DNA of 64,000 bases from Bugula neritina. Taxonomy: Eukaryota; Animalia; Bryozoa. The notes below the pieces were generated by a model. The model worked only from the letters and a program-made list of their open reading frames with translations, ran no database searches and was not told the DNA's origin. Where the stretch lies: the NCBI GenBank assembly GCA_964035545.1, contig OZ037766.1:30292274-30356273 (forward strand), written 5' to 3'. The position numbers and the translations under genes were made by a program. Below, in pieces: positions 2,675 through 59,299 of the stretch; within the stretch, counting starts at the first letter, position 1; the number at the start of each line of letters is the position of its first letter.

Positions 2675-5600
2675 CACTTGTAGTCTACTATACAAATTTG
2701 AAATGTAATCATCTCTCAAACAACCTAAAAGAATCTAAAGTACAAACCTCTTTTTATAGATTTTTGGTTTAAAGTTGTAAATATTACACTTTGAAGCTAA
2801 CTAAAAAGTCTAGTTTTGGGTTTACTCAGTAGTTCTTAGGTGCTTGCAAGAGAAGGGGGACAAAAGTCTAATACAAAGTCAATGTTATTGAACTAGCTTG
2901 CTGTTCAATGATTTTACTACAGTTTGCTATCTAGAACTACAATTACTTGTACTATACTATAACTATATTGCTCAGGGAAACTCAAGGCTTTTTCTTCCTT
3001 AAATATCTTTTATACAATCAAAGAGCAAGAATTCACCAAAGTAGAAACAATAAATCAGACTTTCATGTGACACATCATTAAACACTCTTCAAAGGCATTA
3101 AATTTGGCAATATACTTAGGTTAACGTCCTGAGTTAAAATCTATTTGGACTAACACTGCTTTGACTTAAAAAAAATTTTCTAACTAATATAATTTCCGAA
3201 CCATCAAATTATCAATTACCTGTCACCAGCTGTCAAAATAAAATAATTAGCTTAACAATTATATTATATCAATTACTTGGTTTAAAAAATCATTGTTTTT
3301 CTACATATAAGTAACTCCTGAGCCTTGAAAATCTGAATGTGAAAACTATTAGTTATATAACAAGTTAGCATAGTCTATCCATTAACCTTGTTAATAATTA
3401 TGAATTAATTAAAGTAATTACCTGTGCTATAAGGTGAGACTTCAGGAACTCTTTGAAAAGGTGTTGAATGGTTGCCATGACGATGCCTGTATCCTGTGAC
3501 AGTGAGTTACTTGACTTCCTTTGTAATAAGAGAGCCCTGTTTTTTAAAACATACCTAAATGTCTGCTATTTGAAAAAAATTGTTCAGATATTTGTATAGC
3601 TAATATGCTTTCTAGCTTCATTCACCCCCATGCTTTGCATTATGGGAATGAATTTAACTAAACCACCAACATAAGTTAATGCAAGCTCAATCTATGCCGA
3701 AAGAATCAGTTGAAGCATTGGAAACCCAGTGAGTTTCAATTGAATGAAGCCACAAGCACAGGTTAAGGCAACCATAAATTCATTTATACAGCATTTATGC
3801 ATCCATTTAAAGCATGAGAACATATAGTGAATGCTGATATATGATTTTACAGGTTTCAGTCACCAGGATTTGTGGTGGTTAAAATGTTGATAACATAAAT
3901 ACATATAGCATATGATGGTAATATTTTCTATGGCAAAATAGTTATATGCAACATCTTGAAAACTCATAGTAATTGAAAATCATGCATATAGTACAGCTAG
4001 AATTCCCTATAGCGTAATAAATTATGTAACATTTCAACTTGCTGTGTACAAATCTGTACTCTGTCGTCTGTTTATTAATATACTCTTCTCTGTCAGCATT
4101 TTAGTTACCAGAAATAAAGCAATTTATTTGTAGTCAATAGTGTTTTTGAGTGCATTTATAGCATATATAAAGTTTTAGCTTTTGATACCACTTACTCATT
4201 GCATCTATCAAATTGGAGTTTATAGTGAAACCTTAACTAAAAATGTAATTTACAAGTTTAAAAAACTTTCACATTTATATTAAGTTGCTTTTTTTGAATT
4301 GTTTAACAGTGTTTTATTCAATAAATTGGACTATTTTTCAGAAATTGCCTTTTTTAAATTATTTCTTTGTGTCAACTAAACATTCAAAAATAAAATAAAG
4401 TCTAGACATGTAATCCTGATAATGGTATTTTGAAAATTTTAGTTATGTAAAGCTTGCTTATATAACCTGGATTTTGCTTTAAATAAAAATAAACTTGTCT
4501 TGACTTTATTGGTAGGATAATAAGAAAACTATAACTCAAATGTGTCGCAAAAAATACCATAAACTTGAATATTTGCTACATATAACAGTTTTTGCAAAAA
4601 GTATAATTATACTGCCAAAATTTTATTCCAAAAACTATTCACTTCAAACATAATTTAGTTTTTAGACCTATAGAGAGAGTTATAGGTGGAAAAGTCACAA
4701 TTTTATATAATCTATATCCACAGAGGAAAAATATAATGTAATATATATGATAATATATATCTTCAAAGTTTTATAGAAGCGTCTATTTTAATATGCACTG
4801 CTAGAATTACTTGATTTATTTTGCTTTCCTCAACAATGATACATGGCTAATATCATTATATAAGCAGTGTTTAAAGCCTATATGCTAGCATATGCTCATG
4901 CCTGCTTATTTTATCAAGAATATAACCGCAACAACATTCTCATTAAAAAAATTGGCAGTTTGGTGAATGATCAGCAAAAGCAGTATAGATAAAAACCCCT
5001 AGAGCTACATAATGCAAGCTGCTGCACCAACATCATAGAGCGGCAAAATCGATGGCAAAAAAGCATAGAAGTGATGAAGAGCTGTATATGTATATGCTGT
5101 GTCCTTCAACTGCAGGCTTTAAAGATAACAAAAAAGCAATCAAGTTTACCACAATACATTCAAATTAAGAGTCGTGGTTAAACTAAACATGAACTTTATT
5201 ATAATAATTTTTATTAATATGTTTTAGAGACTTATTGTCACGACCTTATTATAGTCCTGAAACTGAAAAATCCATAGATAGGTGACACTTGCATGCCAAT
5301 TAGATTGTTTTCGTCACTTTAGCCTGAAATAAACATCCAGTTAGAGATAGCATCTAATTAGCATTTGATAAATGAGATGATCAGCATAATACAGCACAAA
5401 ATTTAGTATAAAAGCCATTCAAAACATGTAGAATAGTCAAAGAAAACTATAATTTGCGAAAAAAGACACGCTCATCAGGTATTCATATATAATTCATTTT
5501 TTCTCTCTATAAAAGTTTTCATTTTCTTGCTTTAATTTGGAAGTGCTTTTACTTTTATTTAAGTTGAATTGAGCAGGGTAATAATAAAACTTGGTGTTAA

Positions 5601-5785
5601 TTATGTCAGTGAATAGTTAGCAAAGTTTCTTAAAATAGGATTTTGACAAGAGAAAGTTTTTTAACTTGGCTTATGTGTATCTAAATTGAACGACACCAAA
5701 ATGTTGCAAGCAGTTTGTGTACGTGTGTGTCTGTTGTTTATATGTGTAGTTCTTTAAACTATCTTGTATATAGAAAACTGCAAAA

Positions 5786-6893
5786 ATGAGAACTCTGGTA
5801 TTGATATTCTTGTTGGTATGTGTGATGATAGCGGCCGCCTCTCAAGCTCATTTTAGACAAAGAGGGGGAAACTTTGTTAACCGTCGGCAAGGAGTTCTAA
5901 GTAAGTATAAATTGCTAATTTGTTGTATATACAAAGATAATTACTATAATCAAATAAAATGATGAAAAATATAATTTGTTGACGGATAAGATGCACTTAT
6001 TGTAAGTTTGAAGCAGCAAAATTATTCTGTCATTTAAATCCTGTTTAGTTCTTCAAAACCTTAATTGTATATTACTCTAAGAAAATTTTTTGAAATATTT
6101 GAAAATAAAAACTTGGATAAAATGGGATATGTTTTTAAATAAAATTAAATTATTTTCAATTGTTTATTTATGATACCAAAAAAAGCAATAAAATTATTTT
6201 TTATATCATATATATATAGAGCAGTGGAAAGTTTCACATATCAGTTTTAAAACTTACCATTGAATTAAAAATAATTTGGCAATTTTAGTTTAATTTATTT
6301 ATTATTTCATAAGCAATGAAATATGCAAATATCTTCAATTAATAAACATTTTAACTTTTATGACCAATTTTCTATAGTTCTGTTACCTGTATATACCTGT
6401 TTGTATCTATACTCTTCTTAGCTGATATTAAAAAGTGGGCTAAGGGTAGAAAGCCTTTAGAAAACATTACTAAAAGTCGGGTATAAAGTGAGAGTGTACA
6501 AATTGTCACTTGATTAATTTTGAATTTTTGTTAATTTTCAAAGAAAATTTAAATTATATCTTAATATTTATAAATATTTTCATGTTTATTTATGTGCATT
6601 ACTGCCATGAATTAAAGAAATGTTTTAGATTATGTTATTTTGCACAATACACGTGTGAATAGTAATAAGTTAATACATGCTATATATGAATGATTTGAAT
6701 GTGAACCATGCTTTCATACATTACAGGCAGAAGATGCAATAGCTGTTTCAGAAGAGCTGAGGCTTTTTGTCACAGACAGCATTTGAGTCACCAGAAATGC
6801 CGAATTGAGACGAATATTCGATGTGGACATATTTGCAACAGGAGGGGCCATAGACTTGCTTTTTCACAAAAAGCTTTAAATCACAAAAAGTAA
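5786..6893 (+). CDS. Secreted 6-Cys cationic peptide, paralog A (93 aa); join(5786..5900,6727..6893)
   Basis: Exon 1 MRTLVLIFLLVCVMIAAASQAHFRQRGGNFVNRRQGVL (hydrophobic signal peptide), donor gtaagt at 5901, phase 1, acceptor ttacag ending 6726. Exon 2 SRRCNSCFRRAEAFCHRQHLSHQKCRIETNIRCGHICNRRGHRLAFSQKALNHKK*. Start context nearly identical to paralog B. Confidence 0.85.
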
Positions 6894-8827
6894 ATTAAAC
6901 AGCTACAAATTGTCTTTTATTGAGTGTTTGCGTTTATTTTTGCTTTATTGCATCCTTGTAACAATTTGTTTTTTCTTTTGTTTAAATATTTGTAAAAGAA
7001 CAAGATTGATAAACATATTGTTTCAAGTTTACACTGTTTACATTGACTAAAATAGTTTTAAACCACACTTTAATTATATTTTGATGTTTTGGAAGAACAA
7101 ATATTTTGTCGTTTAAAATTAAATAAATAATATTTGCAATAATACATACCATACTATAGATTTGTCATCACATTGAAGATAATATCTTGAGCATAAACTT
7201 TATAAGACACAAATTGCTTGGTCTGAGTCTCTTATAATTTGATTCAACAAACTTTCAACTGTACTGTGAGATGCTTTAGTCATTACAATAAACGTTCTCA
7301 TAAAACTTTTAACTTTTAAATTGTGAAAATTAAACTTTTATTCATTCTACTATAAAAAAAACAACATTTTCTTCTTCTATAATGTAAGTCGTAAATTCAG
7401 CAGAAAATTATTCTCTTAACTGCTTTCCTTATTAAATAACTAAACATTTATTCGGCAAGATGCAAGTGCTCAAACCTAATGTTTTATTCAGTTTTATTTT
7501 TTTATATACAAAATGAGCTAAAATAGCAAAAACCTTTCCTTGAATAATCAACATAATTTTGCTATATACACTTTTTATTCCCTGCCTAATTTATTTCCTG
7601 ACACATATATACATCATTTCAATTTAAGAACACCTATAACACTCGTGTCTATTTGCATGTCTGCCAAATCTATATTATACCTGCATGAACAAATATTGTT
7701 TATTTTAGGACTTTTATATATATAATACTATTTAAAAACCAAACACTTAATCTCATGTGAAATATAAGAAACAAAGTGCTAAAGGTGTTCATTATAGAAT
7801 ACATAATAGACTTATGCAGGTGCTAGAGGCCTTGCTAATTTTGCTAACTGATTTTGCCTGTGTCTAAATAGCTTTTAAATAGTATAATATATATATATTG
7901 TAATGATTTGTATAAGCAATCAATTGTAAGTGGCAAAAACTTTCCCTATTTTTTCATTCATGTTAACCTTGCCATGTTTATAGAATTAAATATAGCATTT
8001 CTATAAATCAACTGCATGCCACCAGCAATGCTGTCTTTTTTAACTAGGAAAACCTTTGCAAGAAAACCAGCTTAACATACAGTCTTTTTTATAAATATTT
8101 TATCTGCTGTTATATATGTTTTTTAACAAAATTTTAGTATTTTCTCAGTTTCATGCTTTAAATTAGCATTTATGTATTATATTATAGTTGCTATATTGCC
8201 ATAGCCTCAGATTAAAGTTGGTGGCACTAAAACTACAGTCTATAATGTATAGATTCCAAGCTATCATTTTCCTTCTACCTGCAATACACAACATTTAATA
8301 TAATTTTGCTTTAGGTGTAATCAATTTGTTATAATTCTATTGGAAAATTTTAGCAGCTTATTGTACTTTAGGTGTTGTGATTGCATATCAATATAATTTC
8401 TCAAAATCTTTCAAGTTAAAGTTCTGTGCAACTCTTTTAATGCAAAAGTCAATTTGATTTCGGTTAATTAACTTTTTTGTTTGATTTTTCAGTTTCTTAT
8501 ATGCATTCAAATATACTATTAAATTTTTTATAAATGTGATAAAACTTTTGCTGTCAAAATTTATGGATCATTTTATTAACATTAAAAAACAAGCAATTTG
8601 CATTTAGTTCATGCAATAAAATAACATTTGAATGCAATTTCAATTTGTTATGAGTTGTTTTGCTCATAAACAATAAAAAATTAAAACAATGTTACTTAAC
8701 TTATATACTAATTTGAAATATGTTACCAAATAGACAATTAACTGGTTTAAACAAAAAAGAATAAACAAACACAACAATTCAACAGCTGGAAATAAAAGCA
8801 GACATGATCTAAAGTTCAAGTATTCTT

Positions 8828-9712
8828 TTATTTTCCAACTGCAATAGGTCTAGGGAAAATAGGTTGGCCAGGTCTAGGGAAGATAGGTTGGCCAGGTCGT
8901 CCAACAATAGGCCTGATAGGCCTGAATGGCCTAATAGGTCTGAATGGCCTGATTGGTCTAGGTCGGTTACAAATTCTTCTGCATCTACCAAAGAATGTGG
9001 TTCCGCATCTTCTGCTTTGATTTCTTCTTCCACTGCAGCGACGATCTTCCTGTCTGAAGCAAGCACCGCATCTTCTACCTAAAAATTAGAAACAATAATG
9101 TTCAGATTATCTCTAGAATAAGGTGTGATTATGAAATTTGCTTTAAAAAGTTCTCTAAGGTCTAAGGTGTTATTTTAATAAAAAATGGAGTTTAATTTTA
9201 TATAATAAATACACTTTATTTAACGTATGTTTTTTATCTTTAGTGTCTAAAACTTATTGATTGATTACAAAAATATTAGATTTAGCAACAAATAGTGTTA
9301 GAAACATTAAAATCATGCTTGTTTGATTTTTAAAATATTTTGAAATAATAAGTCTTGAAAGGAACAATAAAATTGGCACCGTGTGTTTAGTAATATATCT
9401 TCAGTTACGTGTTTTTAATTTTTAGGCTGTTGATTTCAATCAGTACTTCCATAGTGTCCTACATGGACCTCAAGTAATCTAATATTAAAATCCCACTGTA
9501 TGAAATAATTGAGAGAGCTATCAATTTACTGATTGCCATCTTATCATACAATGCAATATTGTTTTATTGTGTCATGTTGCTAGTTGTTCTAATTTAAATA
9601 AGGCATATAGTGCAATACACTTACTGCGAATTGCTCCTCGACGATCAAATTGAGCAGAAACCATCACCATCATCACACAGATCAACAAGGATACCAAAAT
9701 CAGAGTTCTCAT
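8828..9712 (-). CDS. Secreted 6-Cys peptide with Pro/Arg-rich tail, paralog B (112 aa); complement(join(8828..9078,9625..9712))
   Basis: MRTLILVSLLICVMMVMVSAQFDRRGAIR | SRRCGACFRQEDRRCSGRRNQSRRCGTTFFGRCRRICNRPRPIRPFRPIRPFRPIRPIVGRPGQPIFPRPGQPIFPRPIAVGK*. Donor gtaagt, acceptor tttttag, phase 1. The correct frame is absent from the ORF track because exon 2 has no start codon near its 5' end. Confidence 0.9.
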
Positions 9713-12591
9713 TTTTGCAGCTTTCTACAAGATCATAAAACTGCAATGCTCCTAAACTAGTTATTGGAAACATTTTCATAATTAGTTTAGTTAGCTAACA
9801 TATGTACATCTTTTTCTATTCACTTACCAAAAGGCTTTTTAGATAATTTAAATTTAACTAATGTGCACAATTTATACTTTATCAAATGTACATAAATTTT
9901 TGCCAAACTTTTAAATTGTTCAACTCAAAGCAAGGTGTTACAGTTGATGAATGCATTGAAATAAATTTGAAAATGCTTTCAACTTTTTACTATCTGCAGA
10001 ACAGTTTGAAAAAAAGTTTGTTTTATAAAAGTACCTGATAAGTTTTCTTCCCAAAAGTGCTTCTTTATCAAGATGATATCCTATGAATATTTCAGTCATT
10101 GCGCGACTTTTATACCTAATTTTTGTTGCGTTGGACATCCCATTCATCAAATACTGATTAGGTTCCTTTTTTCAATCAAAGATTTTTTAAATATTACAGT
10201 GCAAAAATTGACAGGTAAATTATAAATTTGATCTGAGTGTCCGTTACGTGTGAATTTTAATTGGAATACTGCGAGTGGTGTCAGTAGATTTCACTGTGTG
10301 ATTTAAGATGTATTAATGACTAATAAAGTGCGATTTTGTGTAAGGCAAGACGACTCCTAAAAAGCAATATAAAATATGCTCCGGATTGTAAGTTATAGCA
10401 TTCTAATATTTGTGCTTTTCAATTATTTAAAATTATTTACAAGAAAATTTGTATCTTTTAATTCAAGCTTTATTATTACCTAAATTGTTTAAAAAGCTCT
10501 AAAATTAGGTTATATATAGGCTATCATATATTATATTTGGTTAGCTTTTTATTAAGATCTTGTGCACGCTATTATAAAGCTGTACCTATAGTTACGTATG
10601 GGCATAACATTTTTTAATTGAATTTAATTCAATATTCTAATCAAGTTAAAAAAATAATCCTGCTGCATGGAAAGACTATAACAATTTTTTGTTTTGTAAA
10701 AGTTATAAATCCTAAGTTAGTATATTATTATAACAATGTACAGTGTTAAACATTGAATCTTTTATACCATCTTGAAAGTTCTGATATATAGTTGCCAGTG
10801 AAAAATTTTTAGTTTTATTGATTGCATTCTTTTAAAAAGTTGCTTGTGTGATTGTAAACTATATGGACAGCGTGAGTGAATGTAGAACTATTTAAAATAT
10901 TTTCACTGATGTACGAGGAATAATACTATTATATTTCCTTTAAACACATTGTGCAATAAATCTTATTTCTGATATTCTTTTTTTCTATTTATATAACCGT
11001 TGACAAGTTTATAGGTAAGCTGGATTTTCTAGATACTGCTTTCTGATAAATGTTTTTTTTTAAACAGGAAAAGATCTTATATTTATGACATTGCTTATAA
11101 ACATTGCCAACTTCTGGCCTTTAATGTCTATAATTGCTTAATGCATTACATATACTAGTAAAATATGTAAGGGTCAAATAAATTATTTCAAACACAAAAT
11201 TTAATTTTCCAAAGAATACCTAGCATTATCAAAATGCAAATACAGAAAATGTATCCAAACTATATGCCTTTATTGTACCTACAGATTTTATGCATGAGAA
11301 AAGTTACACAGCCTCTTATTTTAACTATACTGAAACATTTTTGAAATTAGAAAAAATGTTATTTAGTAATATGAAAGACATCTTTCCTAAAAGTGCTAAA
11401 GCTGCAATGATTGTAACTTGATAATTTTCATTGATATTTTAGCAGTTGACTTTTAAAAATATTATATTTATTTTTTTTAGTCAATTGTTAATTTAGTTAA
11501 ATTTTTTTAGAAATTCGTTTAATAAACAATATAAGTAAAAAAGTTCAAAGGTTAAACTGGGGCTACAATTTTTTTTTATATTTAGTGAGATGATCAAAGG
11601 TCTAAATCGAAAATTTCAAAAAACTTTATTAAATCTAAGTTGCAGCATTAAGCAAACTATATACTATAAATTTGTTGCATTTCATTTAGGTGGTTTGCTT
11701 TATTATATTTCTTGCTTGTTACATAATATGAAGAACAATTCTTTGTTTGTGAAAAATAGGAATCACACTTACTGTATGTATAATCAATCTTGCAAATATA
11801 AATTATATTGTATAAATAAAAGGAGAAAAAGTACAGAAGTGCAAAGACCAATACAATTATTGCAATAGGAAATTCTGATTGAATTACATTAAAGGATATC
11901 AAAATGTACATAGCTAGTCGCAATATCAGGCATCTACTTTCAGATCAATTGATTTCGCAACAGAATGTTATTTTCTCAGAACCGTCATCTTAAAGTTTTA
12001 TTGTGCTGTTTGTTGGCCTTCAGTCAAAAAACTAAATTATGTTTCAAAAACACAGTATATTTAATAGCATTCCGAGTCGGGTCACTAACTAAGGCACATA
12101 GGTGCCAAAAATATATATTATATCAAAGCAAACCAAATATGCTAACTTGGTGTTTAGTGTCATTTTGAGATCATCATTCATTTTTGCTTGCCAAGAATTA
12201 TTTTCAGTTACTTCTAGCAAACAGTTCTGAACACAATTGCCTGTAATTATGTGGAGTATATCATATATATGTTATGAGAATGTAATTATATTGGTGGCTA
12301 AAATGATTAAATCTACAGAGCCATAAATCTTCAGCTGTAGTGAGCCACTTCTTTGCGTTGACATGCTTATAGAGAGTATTTCCTAGTGGATAGTTGCGTT
12401 GAAGTATCTTCCCAGTAATTGTGCCACACTTAATGGAACTTTTAATATGTAGCAACTACTTGTATAACATTATAAGTATTTTCATATTTCCAAGCTATAA
12501 CTTAAATTCTTGAAGATAAAATATTTTAATGTTAGTTTAGTACTGTTAAAATCACTATTTAATTCTTTAGTGAATCAAGTTCTTTTCTATA

Positions 12592-15603: not shown

Positions 15604-16514
15604 ATGAAAGTCAGCGTTTTGGCAGCAGTACTGTTAGTGAGCCTGGTCGTAGTGCTCACTTCCGCTCAACAGCTTGTCCACCCATCTGAAGATGGTAAGT
15701 AAATACGTTAAAATATAATAATTCTTTGTTATAATAATAAGTTATCAGTGTTGTGAATTAAATTAGGATTATGAAAAACATTGAGTAAGAAATTAGATTA
15801 TTTAACTTTCCACAAAATAACAATTGATTGCTAATTATTTGTTTAATACAATGTTATTGAGCTTTACAATAAACACAAGATCAGAGTTATGAGTATGCCT
15901 ATGCATGTATATAATATACACCAACATATAGAATAAGTGCTAAAACGGGAGTAAAAAGAAATTGAATTACCACATTGCTTATCGTAAATATAGTTACCAA
16001 AGCAAATAATTTCAATTACCTGTTTATTAATTGATAACATTTGAAAGTTATTAAAAGAAAAAACACATGATGGTACGGTATTGTGTTGTGCAAAATATTC
16101 ACATTGTCAGTGCATACAAATAATGTATTATTTCTTATTGCATAATATGTAATTTGTATTTCAATTTAGCATTGTTTTGTAAACATTTTGCTCTTTACTT
16201 ATTTATCAGGTCGAACGTGTCAGCAATGTCGTAGAATTGTGATAAACCGATGTCTGGGTTTTGGAACCCGACTTCGATCTAGATGTCAGGAGAAAGCAGA
16301 TCAACGATGTGCTATAGTTTGCCAAACAACCACGGCTTCACCAACCACAACTCCTATGATGACAACCTCAATGAAACCATTCTGTAAGTTTAGATGCGGA
16401 GGAAAATCTAAATTTGGTCGCAGAGGCGGGCGTAGAAGAGGAAGCTTCAGAAGAGGTCAAGGCAGCTTCAGAAGAGGATTCTCGGGCCGAAGAAATGGCG
16501 GAGCTCAACAATAA
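15604..16514 (+). CDS. Secreted 6+2-Cys peptide with Thr linker and Gly/Arg tail, paralog C (131 aa); join(15604..15694,16210..16514)
   Basis: MKVSVLAAVLLVSLVVVLTSAQQLVHPSED | GRTCQQCRRIVINRCLGFGTRLRSRCQEKADQRCAIVCQTTTASPTTTPMMTTSMKPFCKFRCGGKSKFGRRGGRRRGSFRRGQGSFRRGFSGRRNGGAQQ*. Phase-1 intron gtaagt...tatcag. Confidence 0.9.
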
Positions 16515-22344: not shown

Positions 22345-25300
22345 TTAGTCTCTTGCTATTAGATCATTATATTTTCTTGAGCAAGATGTTAGTCCATACG
22401 AAATAAGGAAGAGAATAAATTGGGCTATGGTATACACAAAAGCAATACCTAATACAAATACAGCTGCCAGCCCTGGAGTGTTTTCCCAATCGATAACTGG
22501 ATAAACAACTGTTCCAGTAACCCTCCACAAAATAATTGTAAAAAAAGCGTAGGACAAACCAAATATTACTGGCTGGTAAAAGTGGAGAATACGAGTGTTT
22601 ACAGAGCTAATGTATTGCTCAGTGACCATAAGGACAAAATTGACAACGTGTACTGTAATGTTGTTGTAGGTAATATCCTGGTCACTGTAGAACAGACCCC
22701 AGTAGGTAACTGTTACTAAACCAGAACTAGGCAGAGCAATGTTATAAAATAGCCATTGAATCTTCATAAACCAGGGTAAAGGAGTTTCTTCAATTCCATG
22801 AGCAGTCTCAGAATTTCCCTAAAATATTTTTTAAGAAACTGTAACAATGAGCATAAACTTTTAACTTGGAAAATGATCTTTGACTGTGACAATAACAAAG
22901 TATTTTTAATGGGGCAAGATGTTTTTAATGTTTTTCATGAAATAAATTATTGATTTATAATAATTATAAAAAGACAAAACTGTAATTTCTTTAATCTTAT
23001 ATACACTGCTATCATAAGCATGCATTATAGAGTTATTATTATATAGTTAAATTACTACATATTTTTTAAAATTCCTTACTGCAATGATGTTACCGCATGG
23101 TAGATTTGACATTTTGAAAAGTTTAAATTCATTTGTGTAGACGCATGTGTATAATAAACATATATTAAGCTTTAATTTATAATAAATACTTCTTCATACA
23201 CAGAGCAGACCTAAACATTTGAAAACTAATGGCTAGTTTATATACATATATTATAGCATAACAACACAACTTTTCTTTAAAACCAGGAGTTGCATTCCTT
23301 CAGGTCCTGCTATCAATTTTATTAAATACAAAAAACTAATGCAAGTGTATATAGTCATCATCTCTGTGAAAAAACCCACCTCTTCCCAAATGGAAAAAGT
23401 TTATTTTACTCGGCACAGGAGCAAATGTGACTAGATATTCTTCCTAACATGCATCACCAATGACTTTTACTGGGGTTTGCTGTATAACCCGTAGTCCACG
23501 GCTAAAAATTTTGCTGACCACTTTTTTTAAAAATGATATTTATGTTGTCTCAGTTTGTGTCATTGTACATTTGGCAGATTTTTCTACATATAATATATTC
23601 TTTTCTTATAGAATAGAAAAAAATGTTATTACATTCAGATTGCTATAGTGACCTCTCCTAATATATTGAGATTTGATTTTATTCTAAGTTATAATGAATT
23701 TCTAGTTTCTAACGGTTACGGTGAACTTTATTTTAAAAATTATGTTTGAAATTTGTCTTGGTAGATCAAAAATTTATCACAATTATTTGCATCTATATTA
23801 CCACATCTGCACTACTACCATACTTTAAATAGTAGAAAAAACATGTAAAAGCATCTAAAGCATTGTGTTTCAACTTCTATAATAATACAACACTTTGCTA
23901 CGATATATTTTGGTTTTATTTATTTATAGAATTTTGTTGAAGTCTTTAGCCACAATATATTGTGTTGAAATATTGTGGTTTAAATTTTTAATTACAGCAA
24001 TATAGCTTACTGCGTATAATATTTTGGTAAACTGCTCAATCCTAATTAATAGCTTGTTTTACTATACCATTATTTAAATCCAAAACTGACAACAGCTATA
24101 TTATGCAATATACAGCATAAATGTAGTAATATGCTTTTATTTCATAGAAAATGAATAGAAATGTATGAGTCATACCTGAGAGGCAGTTTCTGATGAGTCA
24201 GCAAGTTTTCTTCTTGCAGCACGTTGTGTACACAGATAATACACACTACAACAATGTTTAATACACTGGTGCACTATATATGCACAGATATATCATAAAT
24301 GAAGAAAAAAAGTCTTCTTTTCAAAACCTAATTTCTCACACTAAATCATACCATATTGTAATAAAATATTTTTCATGCAAACATATAAATTTAGCAACAA
24401 ATTTAGCGACAGTTTTTATATGGGCTAAAAGATCAGACGACTCTTAACAATTTTAACAAAAACTCTTATTAGAAGGCTCATCATGAAGCACTTGTAGTGA
24501 TTTTAAATTTAATGAGCAAGCATTGAGTTAATTATATAGATAAAGACACTTTCTTAGCTTTATTAATTTATGCAGTGACTGTACATTCATGTAAAAGTGC
24601 TAACGCATAATATATAAGGACTTTTAAGGCAGATATGAAAATTATAAGCATTCTGTAATTAATAAGAGCTGTATAATTTAATTTGCCTGCGGATTGTATT
24701 GAACAAATATGTCTATACCAGCTAATCTTTTCACTGCATATCTCTTCACAGTTTCACAGTAACAGTAACAGATTGTAATTACATAATAGCTTTACAGGTG
24801 TGAAGCAGTACAATCACAGGTGGTTACTTTAAACACTTGAGCAGTAAATGCTGCTTCAGGCCCTTAGCATTTAAATTAGGTAATTCAAAATTTCAAATTG
24901 CAAAATAAGTTTCAACTCCTTATCACAATGCATTAATACATTTTACCTAGCTGACCTCTACTCCTGAATGCATGTTTGACATCATATAGTACTACACACA
25001 ATGGAAAGCAAATATGTTTGTGTTAATCTGTTAAATACTCCGCAGTCGTAATAATAAAAGAAGAGAATGACTGAGTTTATGTGCCTCACTACTGAATCTA
25101 TGAAATCATGCATTAGCTTTTAATCTTGAAAAACAAGAGAAGCCATTGGCAAGCTTAACAATCATGGTTTTCATGCATTTTAATGGTGAGAAAACCAGGC
25201 TAATTGGGCTGCTTATGGCATATGTTGTACAATAGCAGTATAGGTTAGGTTGAAACTTTCTGCACTTTACAAATATTCATGGCGATCCAGCACTTTTTAT

Positions 25301-27554: not shown

Positions 27555-30500
27555 TCATGTTTCTACGCGTTCATATCTTTTTGCACAAACTGCCAGTCCA
27601 TAGGAAATAAAGAAGAGAAGAAATTGGGCTATAATATACATAGCAATTATACCAAGCACAATTCCAGTGGCCAGCCCGGGACTGCTTTCCCAATCTAGTA
27701 TAGGGTAAACAATGGTCCCCGTTGTACTCCACAAGATTACAGTTAAGAGAACATAGGCTGTACCAAAGATGGCTGTATGATAAGTATGAAGGATACGAGT
27801 GTTCACAGAGCTCATGTACTGCTCACTGAACATCAGTATAACATTAGCGGCATGAGTGGCAAAGTTGTTGAAGGTTACAGGCTGGCCATTGTAGAGCAGA
27901 CCCCAGTATACGATCGTTACTATACCAGAGCTAGGCAGAGCAATGTTATAAAATACCCATTGAATCTTCATAAACCAGGGTAAAGGAGTTTCTTTAATTT
28001 TTGGAGCAGTCTCATTATTTTCCTATAATATTGATAGCAGAATGCAATAATGTGCACATGTGATTTCATTTTGGATAATCATTTTTGAAAAAAATCATAT
28101 GCAATTTATTTCTATTATCATGACTAGAATGTAATTTAGAATAAAAGATTTTCAATTTTGACTAAAAATGTTTTTACAATAAAATTAGGCTAAGAAAAAT
28201 TATTTAAACAATTTTTGTTTTGGCAAATTTACTCTTTTGCTCAAGCACATAAAAATTTATTAGTTAAAACGTTGCAAATTGATTGCAACGAAAGCTGATA
28301 GAGAAATTCACTGACAAGATCTATGTATTATAATGACTTTTTATGCTTCATAACACATTTGTTAAAATTTTGATTTATAGTATTAGGTTAGTTAAGAAAT
28401 ATGAAAATATGTTGCTATGATAACATTTTTTGTAACATTTAGTTATAGTTTGACCTAATAATAGTTTATTTCAACAGTTTTCAGTTAAAACAATTGTTCA
28501 TATAATAATATTTGAGTATACTGCGTTTATAGCTGCAATACTTATAGTTATATAATGATTATGTCAACCGGAAAAACAACAGTTATTATACGCAATAAGC
28601 AAAATAAACTTGATAATTATTTTGTTTTACAGCAAAGTAGAAGTATTTGTATGAGTCATACCTGAGAGGCAGTTTCTGATGAGTCAGCATTAGCTTTTGA
28701 GTCAGCAAGCTTTCTTCTCATTGCGAGTTGTGTACACAAATAATACACACTACAATAATATTTTATAGCAATGCCAAATATTGTATATGAACACACAGTA
28801 GCTTTGTAATCTAGAGCAATTGCTTTACTATAGTATAGGACCTATACAATCTGATTTCTCACCTTTCTCCGCCATGTCCTTATCTGATTGAAATCATTAA
28901 TTTATTAAAAGCAACTTGGTTTTTATACATACAAGAATATGAGTTTGGTAATTTTTATGCATGGCAGCTTTCATGCTTACAAAACTTGACCATTATATAA
29001 TTGCTCAACAATAGAGAAGATAACTCCTGATAACCGAAGCTCAAAAATCAATAAAAGGTGCATAAGGAAGCATTATAATATCTTATATATGGTTCAAAAT
29101 TTTAATTTCTGAATTGTTGTATATATATATAAGCTCAATTATATATTGCTATATGTTATATCACATTATGACCACAATATAAGATGTAAGGCACCAGGTG
29201 TAATAATACATTTTGTTTTAACTGATTCAAATGCTATATATATACACATATGCGCCTATATTTAAAAATATAATTCTATATAGAGAAATTTTCAGTAAGA
29301 CTATATAGAAATCTTTACACATTTGCTATAATTGTAAACCATAGTGCATTAATAAATTTCGAAAATTGTATACAAAACCAAGGTAATTGCTAAAGAAGAG
29401 TTTTGAAACTTAACTATATGTGGCGGCTAATAAATAATAATGTATAGAAAGTAGTGTGTGCAGGACTCGATGTATATTGCTTACAGTATGGCTTGTTTAC
29501 CCTGCAACTAAGCTTCAGAGATACATAAAAAACGTGGCTATATAACTACTATAAGCACTAGGGGGCAAGTATCCACATTTGAATAGTCACAGGAATGTTT
29601 AGTAAACTATACAAAGAAATTGCTTTCAAAGGTGAACAATACATGGTACAAAAGTCAACTTGTTGTTTACAGAATCTAAATTAAGTTGTATCTTATTGGC
29701 TGAGCAAATATAGAAAGAATGACTTATAGGTTAAAGTTTTATTTATGAAGAGAAACCCTAAAGGCATGAACAATAGCAATGTAATTGAGAAGGTTCACAA
29801 TGTATGCCTTAAATGTTTGTATATCATATATTACAAGTCTTTTAAAATAAACATATGCTTTATTGAACAAAAATATCAGAGTATTAAAAAGCAGTTACCC
29901 TCACATGACTCTAAGCAGCTTTGCCTACTTATTCTAAATATGTAAATAGTTTTTTCCTCTAGTTATTGCAAGCATCAAACGCAGCAGCACCGCCATTTCG
30001 CCACATAATAAAACTACTGCCAAAGCAGGCTTCAATTCGTTATTAGCTTTTATCAATGTTAAAGCTACAGCTATTGGCTGAGCAGTAATAGCTTAACTGA
30101 ACACAAAATACTAAGATTCACAATGAACATTATAGGTGATTAGAAGATGACAACACGTAGCTTAGATTACAACTTGTATCCTTTGTATTTTATATTATGC
30201 TTTGCTTAACATCCTTGAAGCAAATGCAAGCTATAGATAGACTAATGTTGCAGTTACCCTACACTGAAGTTCTTCAATTGGTTCTTGTGATATAGCTACT
30301 AAATGAATGAAAGCTGTAACATGCATCTACAAGACACCTGAAAGCAACGGCCTTGTTATATGCCATGATATTCAAATTTCTTAACTCTAAATTATGTGAA
30401 GTACATTTTAAGCAATAGAATAAACTTCATAAACTTTACCTTGAGATTGATGCAAAAAGAAAATAAATCATGATGCAGAGGAAACACCATCTTGTAAAGT

Positions 30501-34218: not shown

Positions 34219-35112
34219 ATGAGGGTCAGCATTTTGTCAGTGGTTCTGGTAATGAGTCTGGTGGTGGTGGTTATTTCTGCTCAGCATCGGATTCACCCAG
34301 CTGAAGGTGGTAAGTGAAATATTTATACATATATATATATATATATATTATATATACTAACTCTGATGAAATCAAAACAAATAATCAGTATTTTATAAGT
34401 TAAATTGAGTGAAAAATTAACTTACTTATCGAAATTGTTGCAAAACAACAACTGGTTGTAATTATCATTTTGTACCAATTTAAAAATATGATAAAACTAA
34501 TTAGGTACATGATTTTATGTAAACCAAAACCCAAAAAATTCATAGTAAAAAAATAAAAAACATTTAAAAGTGTTCTCGTATTTTTTTCAATATACCTGCC
34601 AAAATACATTATTTCTCTTTGTCGTGTAATCAATATTTTTAATAGAAAAGTATTTTGAATATCTCTTTTGTAAATAATAATTGAGAATAAAAACACAAAA
34701 TATAATATATTACTGCTGCATCTTGCAAATTAAACATTTGCATTGCAGCTCAATGCTAATATAGCATTATAATATTTTGCATGCTGTACCTATATTATTA
34801 TGTATTCTGTCCTTCTATTTAACATCATTTCTATAAACGTTTTAAAAAAATTTATTTACCAGGTAGAACTTGTCGGAATGTCGTCAAACGGTGATGCACC
34901 GATGCCTGCATTTCGCACACAGGCCGCGACATATATGCCGAGAGAAATCGCATCATAGATGTGTCCGGGCTTGCCAAAAAACTACGGCCCCACCAGCCAC
35001 CACTAGTACTACGACTACTCCAGCGAAACCATTCTGTAATTTTAGCTGTGGCGGAAAACCACATTTTGGTGGACTTAGAAGAAGAAACTTTAGAAGAGGT
35101 CAAAAGCATTAA
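34219..35112 (+). pseudogene. Peptide paralog D with a 1-nt deletion near the start of exon 2; join(34219..34309,34863..35112)
   Basis: Exon 1 MRVSILSVVLVMSLVVVVISAQHRIHPAEG is intact. The spliced frame gives GRTCRNVVKR*. Adding one base at ~34877 restores GRTCRxCRQTVMHRCLHFAHRPRHICREKSHHRCVRACQKTTAPPATTSTTTTPAKPFCNFSCGGKPHFGGLRRRNFRRGQKH*, colinear with paralog C. Confidence 0.8.
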
Positions 35113-58375: not shown

Positions 58376-59299
58376 ATGGGGGACGAAGAAGAAGAAGTCA
58401 TGGTAGAAGGAGAAGAAGAAGGAGAAGGGGACCGTCTCACCATGGAGACGCTCATCACGGCTCTCCGAGAGGTCGGAAAGACCGCACAGGCAGCACCTGG
58501 AGACAGGTATCGCCTGAGGCCTCCGATTTTCGGAGGCGAGGGAGATATCGAACAATTCATCAGAGAGTTTGAGGAGGTAGCCACCCTCGCCGAATGGCCG
58601 GCACCGGTGCGCCTCCTCCACCTCCGTACCTGTCTGACAGGTCAGGCAAAGAGTTATGCTCTGGGACCCAATACAGCGCACATCTTTCAGGCCCTCAGGT
58701 CGCGTTTCGGGCTAACCGCCCGCGCCGCCAGGGACAGATTGCGCACCATACGCCGAGACCGGAAGACCTCACTCCAAGACCATGCAAACGCTATTGAGGC
58801 ACTAGTACCAGTAGCCCATAGCGACGACACACCGGCAGCACAAAGAGGTGCTGTGTATGAAGCCTTCTTCCACACAATCAATAACCCTGGACTACAGCGT
58901 TATTACTTGGCAGCCAAGGTCACCACTATAGAGGAAGCCTTAGCCCTGGGCAAGGCTTACTACCAAGTAGAGGGACCTCAGTGTGCGGATTTCACCGCTT
59001 GTCAGATTGAGGAACGACCCGAAGTCGCTAAGCCGGATCAGCCAAACCCACAGGCCGTGGCGGCTGCTACTACTTCGTCACCTGACCAGATGACCATGCT
59101 GATGGACATGGTAAAGGGATTGCAGGCAGAGATGAAACAGATGCAGAGAGAACAGGCTGATAAACGAAACCCCCGACCCTGGGGTGAACCAGCCGGTACT
59201 ACCCACCTCACCTGCTGGGGGTGTGGTGCCAGGGGACATGTACGAAGGCAATGCCCTCACGAAAGAAGGATGCCTTTTAACACCCGGGGCTCGCGGTAA
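58376..59299 (+). CDS. gag: Gag (307 aa) with CCHC zinc knuckle
   Basis: ORF directly after the PBS; capsid-like PPIFGG..FIREFEEVA..W..L...LTGQA; knuckle CWGCGARGHVRRQC. Confidence 0.93.
   Translation: MGDEEEEVMVEGEEEGEGDRLTMETLITALREVGKTAQAAPGDRYRLRPPIFGGEGDIEQFIREFEEVATLAEWPAPVRLLHLRTCLTGQAKSYALGPNTAHIFQALRSRFGLTARAARDRLRTIRRDRKTSLQDHANAIEALVPVAHSDDTPAAQRGAVYEAFFHTINNPGLQRYYLAAKVTTIEEALALGKAYYQVEGPQCADFTACQIEERPEVAKPDQPNPQAVAAATTSSPDQMTMLMDMVKGLQAEMKQMQREQADKRNPRPWGEPAGTTHLTCWGCGARGHVRRQCPHERRMPFNTRGSR

Follow-up and report, generated by a model that had tools for sequence, protein, structure and literature searches.

A two-exon gene of the bryozoan Bugula neritina encodes a putative secreted arginine-rich peptide with a six-cysteine core and a proline-arginine repeat tail

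Proline-rich antimicrobial peptides (PrAMPs) have been defined as net cationic peptides with at least 25% Pro that act on at least one intracellular target, the 70S ribosome or DnaK (Welch et al. 2020, PMC7736402). Pro-Arg-Pro motifs are common but not obligatory among them, and full-length penaeidin-1 was left out of the group for too little Pro (PMC7736402). Chimeric defence peptides with proline-rich and cysteine-rich parts are known in crustaceans, where penaeidins, arasin, stylicin and hyastatin are cationic secreted molecules that join an extended proline-rich region to a compact disulfide domain (PMC11678341). We describe here gene B, the predicted product of which shares this combination of traits, on the minus strand of a 64,000-nucleotide stretch of DNA (the window) from the bryozoan Bugula neritina (assembly GCA_964035545.1, contig OZ037766.1, positions 30,292,274 to 30,356,273). 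Gene B is a genuine two-exon bryozoan gene whose predicted precursor of about 112 residues consists of a signal peptide (20 residues) and a polycation of about 90 residues; it belongs to a larger family, the members of which carry interchangeable tails. A literature search found no paper describing a gene-encoded antimicrobial peptide from Bryozoa.

Translation of the minus strand over 8825-9079 gave an unbroken frame that runs from an Arg-rich six-Cys core through a Pro-Arg tail to Gly-Lys and the stop codon (for the parts of the gene see Table 1). This hidden frame, which the sequence-only reading (an earlier note made from the letters of the window) had reported as missed by the open reading frame (ORF) track, is identical to the sequence quoted at that time. 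The open frame around exon 2 measures 85 aa and begins only about two codons ahead of the acceptor (TTTTTAG/GT at 9080-9079), which completes the split Ser codon and sets the Cys frame. Exon 2 carries no ATG, GTG or TTG start, for which reason the mechanical ORF list skips the Pro-Arg frame. The GC content of the exon is 43.5%, compared with 20-29% in its flanks. The exons were searched and modelled separately, and the counts for the 90-residue mature chain are sums over the Gln-to-Ser piece, the core and the tail. In these 90 residues we counted 25 Arg and 3 acidic residues (net charge +22), in agreement with the earlier estimate of about 25 against 3.

The choice of this frame is supported by the three paralogs in the window, designated A, C and D. 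All four window genes have GTAAGT donors and phase-1 introns, a phase-1 intron is also found in a relative upstream of the window (the L010 copy), and the distance from the acceptor AG to the first Cys codon is exactly eight bases in A, B, C and D. In place of the Pro-Arg frame, the mechanical ORF list contains an acidic, Leu-rich ORF of 85 aa (8809-9066, minus strand), located one base off the Pro-Arg frame. The peptide of this ORF is a charge mirror of the cationic peptide. As the true product of the gene it was rejected, because the synonymy of the repeats, the conservation of Cys and a stop in paralog A, the counterpart frame of which terminates within five codons, all favour the Pro-Arg frame. 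An open +1 frame is expected here from composition, as a by-product of AGA/AGG-rich repeats that are stop-free in one unit. The Pro-Arg frame is thus taken as correct on three grounds, the shared architecture of A-D, the synonymous variation of the repeats and the stop in the alternative frame of paralog A.

The tail consists of 43 residues, including 14 Pro (33%) and 10 Arg (23%), with a net charge of +10 and three Pro-Arg-Pro motifs; over the full predicted mature chain, the same 14 Pro among 90 residues amount to 16%. Six tandem Arg-Pro-(Ile/Phe) triplets (8959-8906) come first, followed by two copies of the unit Arg-Pro-Gly-Gln-Pro-Ile-Phe-Pro (8899-8852) and by Arg-Pro-Ile-Ala-Val, one further triplet lying near the end. 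The proposed construction from 9-nt and 24-nt DNA repeats was recovered by Tandem Repeats Finder, with periods of 9, 18 and 27 nt at 8906-8960 and of 24 nt at 8846-8898 (96% match). Variation among the seven 9-nt units is confined to the three third-codon positions and to one first position, which gives the Ile/Phe exchange, and the two 24-nt units differ only by CGA/AGA and ATC/ATT, both synonymous. Since the repeat copies differ almost only synonymously, we infer that the Pro-Arg frame is translated and under purifying selection. The tail probably originated locally by tandem duplication of the 9-nt and 24-nt units, the frame being kept afterwards by purifying selection; a genome-wide search found no second copy of it. 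The pLDDT of the tail in AlphaFold2 is below 60, pointing to an extended or disordered chain.

The Cys frame of the core is C-x2-C-x7-C-x9-C-x7-C-x3-C, and the six Cys can be aligned across A, B and C. AlphaFold2 with a three-sequence core alignment gave two helices, residues 2-15 and 21-37, at a pLDDT of 76.5; with exon 2 alone as a single sequence it gave a pLDDT of 66 and a core composed of a beta-hairpin plus a helix (pLDDT about 78). The Cys spacing is mirror-like, with 3 and 8 residues on one side and 8 and 4 on the other, so that C3/C4, C2/C5 and C1/C6 come to face one another, and large insertions in the family are found only between C3 and C4, at the hairpin turn; both traits suit a hairpin closed by a C3-C4 bridge. 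Because of this quasi-symmetry and of the confinement of insertions to C3-C4, we prefer the helical hairpin, and the core is most likely a helix-loop-helix stapled by three ladder disulfides, C1-C6, C2-C5 and C3-C4. Whole-chain structure comparison with the Protein Data Bank (PDB) matched plant disulfide-stapled alpha-hairpinins only, namely Nigellin-1.1 (Z 5.0), Luffin P1 (Z 4.8) and vicilin-buried peptides (Z 4.5-4.9), at 13-21% identity. Foldseek found no match for the predicted structure in the PDB, the VIA wide search with the whole-exon model gave none either, and the ESM Atlas searched by structure returned generic helical hairpins only.

The 140 kb upstream and 60 kb downstream of the window, together with a block about 0.5 Mb downstream, were scanned for the Cys frame. 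At least 10 loci on one chromosome make up the family: four are in the window, five precede it by 30-130 kb and one follows at a distance of about 0.5 Mb. When the whole genome was searched with the core profile or with exon 2 of A, B and C, only the window loci were recovered. Its hallmarks are a signal exon (starting with Met-Arg-Thr in 7 of the 10 loci), a phase-1 intron that immediately precedes the Cys domain, and the pattern C-x2-C-x7-C-(loop)-C-x7-C-x3-C. Gene B carries all three, in common with A, C, D and the upstream loci.

Table 1. Positions of gene B and of the other members of its family (window positions, unless a locus label is given)
Feature	Position	Strand	Characteristics
Gene B, exon 1, part 1: start codon, then signal peptide of 20 residues with Val-Ser-Ala at its end	9653-9712 (start codon 9712-9710)	-	Hydrophobic core, small residues at -3/-1
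Gene B, exon 1, part 2: Gln-Phe-Asp-Arg-Arg-Gly-Ala-Ile-Arg and first base of split Ser codon	9625-9652	-	Donor A/GTAAGT at 9625/9624, phase 1
Gene B, intron (546 nt)	9079-9624	-	GT...AG, phase 1; GC 21-30%
Gene B, exon 2, core: rest of Ser codon, Arg-Arg, six-Cys frame, Asn	8966-9078 (Cys codons within 9070-8969)	-	Net charge +10
Gene B, exon 2, Pro-Arg tail (43 residues)	8837-8965	-	Translation, tandem repeats, composition
Gene B, Gly-Lys-stop, candidate amidation signal	8828-8836 (stop TAA 8830-8828)	-	Would leave Val-amide
Paralog A, tail-to-tail with B	5786-6893 (exon 1 5786-5900, exon 2 6727-6893)	+	Same Cys frame; short basic tail without Pro repeats
Paralog C	15604-16514 (exon 1 15604-15694, exon 2 16210-16514)	+	Same Cys frame, 10-residue loop
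Paralog D (C-like)	34219-35112 (exon 1 34219-34309, exon 2 from 34863)	+	Frameshifted relative to C
Upstream relative L010	L010:8035-8373	-	Cys-frame scan; 30-130 kb before window
Upstream relative L015	L015:6711-7007	+	As above
Upstream relative L016	L016:2808-3077	+	As above
Upstream relative L017	L017:453-728	+	As above
Upstream relative L023	L023:8742-9011	+	As above
Downstream member L030	L030:1548-2298 (about 30851500-30852300), about 0.5 Mb downstream	+	Met-Arg-Val signal exon, Arg-Arg-Cys start

The 5' leader and first codons of paralog A are nearly identical to those of B, and its mature chain would have about 70 residues, compared with about 90 for B. Paralog C possesses, besides a Thr/Pro linker and an additional CxxxC, a tail in which Arg-Gly and Phe-Arg-Arg-Gly are abundant. 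A Thr/Pro linker is also present in D. Paralog D has one base fewer than C between Cys1 and Cys2; its exon 1 frame ends at TGA 34892-34894, and the other five Cys lie in a different frame that is open to 35112. Over the rest of the sequence, dN/dS between D and C is 0.44, and D is probably a young pseudogene, and less probably the product of an assembly error. The five upstream relatives have the Met-Arg-Thr signal start and the phase-1 intron in common and carry 65-88 residues of Arg/Lys/Gly between C-x2-C-x7-C and C-x7-C-x3-C, and their tails are Pro-rich (Ile/Phe-Thr-Pro-Ala-Pro) with mucin-like (Pro-Thr5)n. The L010 copy has a signal exon that starts with Met-Arg-Thr as in A and B, and two near-duplicate pairs, L010/L017 and L016/L023, suggest segmental duplication. 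The downstream member has a 10-residue loop, an extra Cys (seven in total) and no tail. An array of Tyr-rich peptides ending in Gly-Tyr-Tyr lies around it; the array was rejected as part of the same family on its Cys pattern, CC-x7-C-x8-C-x6-C-x3-C.

Taken over the family, loop lengths are 9, 9, 10, 10 and 65-88 residues, and tail lengths range from 0 to 145 residues, from 15 basic residues via Pro-Arg repeats to mucin-like stalks of 140 residues. What stays constant in the family is the signal exon, the intron in phase 1 and the pattern of Cys; the hairpin loop, between 9 and 88 residues long, and the tail at the C-terminus vary freely. Judged from these relatives, a Pro-rich stalk may be common to the family, and the tail of B one version of it instead of a purpose-built antibiotic module.

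Outside this genome, the family matched nothing in any library searched and appears to be undescribed there. Pfam searches with exon 2 of B and A gave sub-threshold noise only, a word-indexed protein search was blank for exon 2 and for the tail alone, and the core profile, run exhaustively with HMMER against 1.84 billion representatives, recovered no credible relative. The single HMMER match, a 1302-residue repeat protein with 13 matches to a 13-residue stretch, was judged spurious. Metagenomes scanned with the core alignment yielded no relative, nothing meaningful came from PDB sequences queried with the tail or the core profile, and the ESM Atlas searched by features gave no usable match. 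The family is not shown by this to be species-specific, because the libraries may simply lack small bryozoan peptides. No homology to mammalian or arthropod proline-rich peptides was found in Pfam, the PDB or the protein library, so any likeness to PrAMPs is convergent, as had been proposed.

Compared with the described systems, gene B would in its action come closest to the crustacean chimeric peptides and in its looks comes closest to the repeats of the Bac5/Tur1A type, and it belongs to neither. Penaeidins and other crustacean chimeras are encoded by duplicated genes with a fast-evolving Pro-rich part, as is the case here (PMC11678341). In penaeidins an N-terminal proline-rich domain is followed by a six-Cys domain. 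Unlike penaeidins, gene B comes from a different phylum, has another Cys spacing, gives no Pfam penaeidin match and presents the two domains in reversed order, the Cys core first and the Pro-rich tail second, as the sequence-only reading had stated; its core is also far richer in Arg than those of penaeidins and crustacean chimeras. With Bac5, Bac7, PR-39 and Tur1A the tail shares the Arg-Pro-hydrophobic periodicity, the high Pro and Arg content and the Pro-Arg-Pro motifs, and in both cases the peptide lies C-terminal to a Cys-containing part of the precursor. Gene B differs from these cathelicidins, however, in having no cathelin domain (Pfam), no sequence similarity and no elastase-type release site, and its N-terminal part is itself cationic instead of a neutralising pro-region. 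The description of the tail as bactenecin-like accordingly holds for composition and fails for homology, the triplet being R-P-(I/F) and not the R-P-P-(I/F) of Bac5. The likeness to Bac5, Bac7 and arasin is one of composition.

Two further groups deserve comparison. The crayfish peptide astacidin 2 is a short Arg-Pro-Arg-Pro...Ile...Arg-Pro peptide ending in Gly-Lys, like the tail of gene B (PMC11678341); unlike gene B, astacidin has 14-20 residues and no Cys domain, and no homology was detected. The alpha-hairpinins (Nigellin-1.1, Luffin P1 and the vicilin-buried peptides) resemble the core of gene B as predicted from the three-sequence alignment, a helix-loop-helix of about 38 residues with ladder disulfides, and several plant alpha-hairpinins and other disulfide-stapled helical hairpins are Arg-rich defence peptides. 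Alpha-hairpinins have, however, two disulfides from CxxxC...CxxxC, whereas three are predicted for gene B from C-x2-C-x7-C...C-x7-C-x3-C; gene B fits the CxxxC motif only in its C5-x3-C6 half, the N-terminal pair being C-x2-C. Common ancestry with the alpha-hairpinins is not plausible.

Concerning processing, translation of exon 1 bore out the claimed secretory signal with Gln directly after Val-Ser-Ala, and the signal peptides of the paralogs finish in SA or QA at the equivalent position. The product of gene B would be secreted, to judge from this signal peptide, and a pyroglutamate N-terminus is possible after cleavage behind Val-Ser-Ala. The furin consensus is R-X-K/R-R, and RSRR (Arg-Ser-Arg-Arg) stands directly ahead of Cys1. 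The N-terminus may therefore differ from pGlu-Phe, and the first ten residues after the signal peptide could be a propeptide, with an alternative N-terminus at RSRR. At the other end, the Gly-Lys reported at the C-terminus is present before the stop codon. Such an end fits processing by carboxypeptidase and amidating monooxygenase; PR-39, an amidated peptide, derives from a precursor with Gly and basic residues at its end, and some penaeidins carry terminal modifications (pyroglutamate, amidation). For an amidated secretory peptide one looks for a Gly-plus-basic end and for amidating-enzyme genes in the organism. Gene B shows the former, as do two other members, L015 and L023, and PF01082, the domain of copper type II monooxygenases, is matched 24 times in the genome (PHM/DBH family, with PHM and DBH-like not separated). 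The Gly-Lys end is probably trimmed and amidated. The idea that both ends are capped stands as far as the Gly-Lys signal and the N-terminal Gln are concerned, and the pGlu-Phe start is in doubt, with the RSRR site offering another N-terminus. The junction between core and tail is Asn-Arg-Pro, with no recognisable cleavage site, dibasic or other. The tail is consequently expected to stay attached, a free tail that SbmA could import is not expected, and the ribosome-tunnel mechanism is weakened.

The reading that we favour, and to which we give an about even chance of being right, is that gene B encodes a secreted host-defence peptide, the whole molecule of which binds and damages anionic microbial surfaces. 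A disulfide-bonded chain of about 90 residues and net charge +22 would act there as a polycation, and the tail would add charge, reach and protease resistance, contributions such as have been proposed for the proline-rich domain of penaeidins (PMC11678341). In favour of host defence are the signal peptide, the extreme positive charge, the tandem gene cluster with fast-diverging tails, and a tail composition (33% Pro, cationic, three Pro-Arg-Pro motifs) within the limits drawn for PrAMPs (PMC7736402); the crustacean chimeras provide a precedent (PMC11678341).

Several observations weigh against this reading or the model beneath it. Four bases past the acceptor, another AG (9076-9075) would shift the whole of exon 2 into the open acidic frame. 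The two AlphaFold2 models conflict, the helical hairpin depending on the three-sequence alignment, and the structure matches at Z of about 5 are no better than those of generic helical hairpins. Neither protein library returned the peptides of the window itself, so that no predicted or transcript-derived protein backs expression, and among public sequencing runs no RNA run holding the locus was found. The sole run with the locus is DNA-like, one contig covering exons, introns and intergenic DNA over 5600-9900, in which one difference lies in an intron and the number of repeats is the same; the run may come from the very sample that was assembled. Finally, the long mucin-like tails of the relatives point equally to a role in matrix or mucus.

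This last point leads to the alternative that survives best, less probable than host defence and yet to be taken seriously, in which the family is structural and not immune. Its members, polycationic, Pro-rich or mucin-like in character, would be secreted into the cuticle, the mucus coat or a larval adhesive and would bind polyanions (sulfated glycans, chitin-associated matrix), and B would be a short one. Pro repeats that recur in tandem with a short period are a typical trait of extracellular structural proteins, and the Thr/Pro linkers of paralogs C and D, together with five upstream relatives that add Arg/Lys/Gly loops of 65-88 residues and long Pro-rich and (Pro-Thr5)n tails to the same Cys frame, agree with such a role. 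Against it, the mature chains of B and A are small, their tails lack Ser/Thr for O-glycosylation, B lacks Tyr or Lys of the kind cross-linked in marine adhesives, and the tails diverge faster than is usual in matrix proteins.

It is improbable that the tail works as an intracellular PrAMP, freed or attached to the core, which enters Gram-negative bacteria by uptake of the SbmA type and blocks the ribosomal exit tunnel. Under the PrAMP definition (PMC7736402) the cationic requirement is satisfied by the tail (+10) as well as by the whole chain (+22), and the 25% Pro threshold by the tail alone (33%, with three Pro-Arg-Pro motifs) but not by the whole chain (16%). The naming of gene B as a proline-rich antimicrobial peptide can thus be retained for the composition of its tail and not for the whole mature chain. 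The Arg-Pro-hydrophobic periodicity resembles the sequences of Bac5 and Tur1A (PMC7736402), and the N-terminal Arg-Pro-Arg-Pro-Ile stretch and the Gly-Lys end of the precursor recur in astacidin 2 (PMC11678341). Against these likenesses, the tail has no sequence relative in the PDB, ribosome-bound PrAMPs included, or in the protein library, and relatives of gene B bear uncharged Pro/Thr tails at the equivalent position. Arg-Pro bonds withstand trypsin-like proteases, which counts against release of the tail; with no cleavage site at the junction, the active form would be the 90-residue disulfide-bonded chain, a poor substrate for a transporter. The ribosome-tunnel mechanism put forward in the sequence-only reading is made less likely, since no processing site separates core and tail and no free importable tail is expected. 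Long odds attach likewise to the broader proposal that bryozoans independently evolved a ribosome- or chaperone-targeting proline-rich peptide fused C-terminally to a new three-disulfide helical-hairpin fold; if it were true, one family scaffold would deliver interchangeable effector tails. One may speculate, by analogy with the NCR peptides of legumes, that such peptides police a vertically inherited bacterial symbiont of the colony through an importer of the BacA/SbmA type.

There is little likelihood that gene B is non-functional as read, being silent, decaying or spliced through the downstream AG into the acidic frame. The failure to find an RNA run, the frameshift of paralog D and the openness of the acidic frame over the whole exon would fit such a state. 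The six Cys of gene B are nevertheless intact, the repeats of the Pro-Arg frame diverge by synonymous changes, the acceptor-to-Cys distance is kept in four paralogs, the alternative frame of paralog A is closed within five codons, and the +1 frame is open as the composition of the repeats predicts. Least probable of all is a precursor of a signalling peptide (neuropeptide, hormone or pheromone) cut at Arg-Arg sites and amidated at the C-terminus, for although the Gly-Lys-stop end, RSRR before Cys1, several Arg-Arg pairs and the many PHM/DBH-family monooxygenase domains encoded in the genome agree with it, most Arg-Arg pairs lie within the disulfide frame, no conserved short peptide recurs among the paralogs, the tails lack any conservation, although the ligand of a receptor usually evolves under constraint, and Pfam gave no match to a neuropeptide family.

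Should gene B be expressed and active as the host-defence peptide that we favour, one more phylum would have reached Arg-Pro repeat peptides independently; the order of the domains, with the Cys core leading, would be new, as would the scaffold, which was not found in the libraries searched. Practical use is a modest prospect until both expression and activity have been demonstrated. For the study of modular peptide evolution the family also offers a compact natural experiment, in which one signal exon and one Cys frame are combined with varied tails and up to 88 residues can be inserted in the hairpin loop.

Some neighbouring features were noted in addition. A G-rich microsatellite (L010:9140-9260, minus strand), in which (GGGCA)n grades to (GGGTA)n, (GGGAA)n and (GAGTA)n, precedes the start codon of the L010 copy by about 400 bases. 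Within the window, exons at 22345-22767 and 27555-27971 (both minus strand) match Pfam Rost (rolling stone) and FAR-17a/AIG1 with E values of 1e-7 to 1e-8, and look like tandem paralogs of a membrane protein between the peptide genes. At 58376-59299 (plus strand), in a GC-richer block at 56-64 kb, a 307-aa ORF with a weak match to the CCHC zinc knuckle is probably a retroelement gag.

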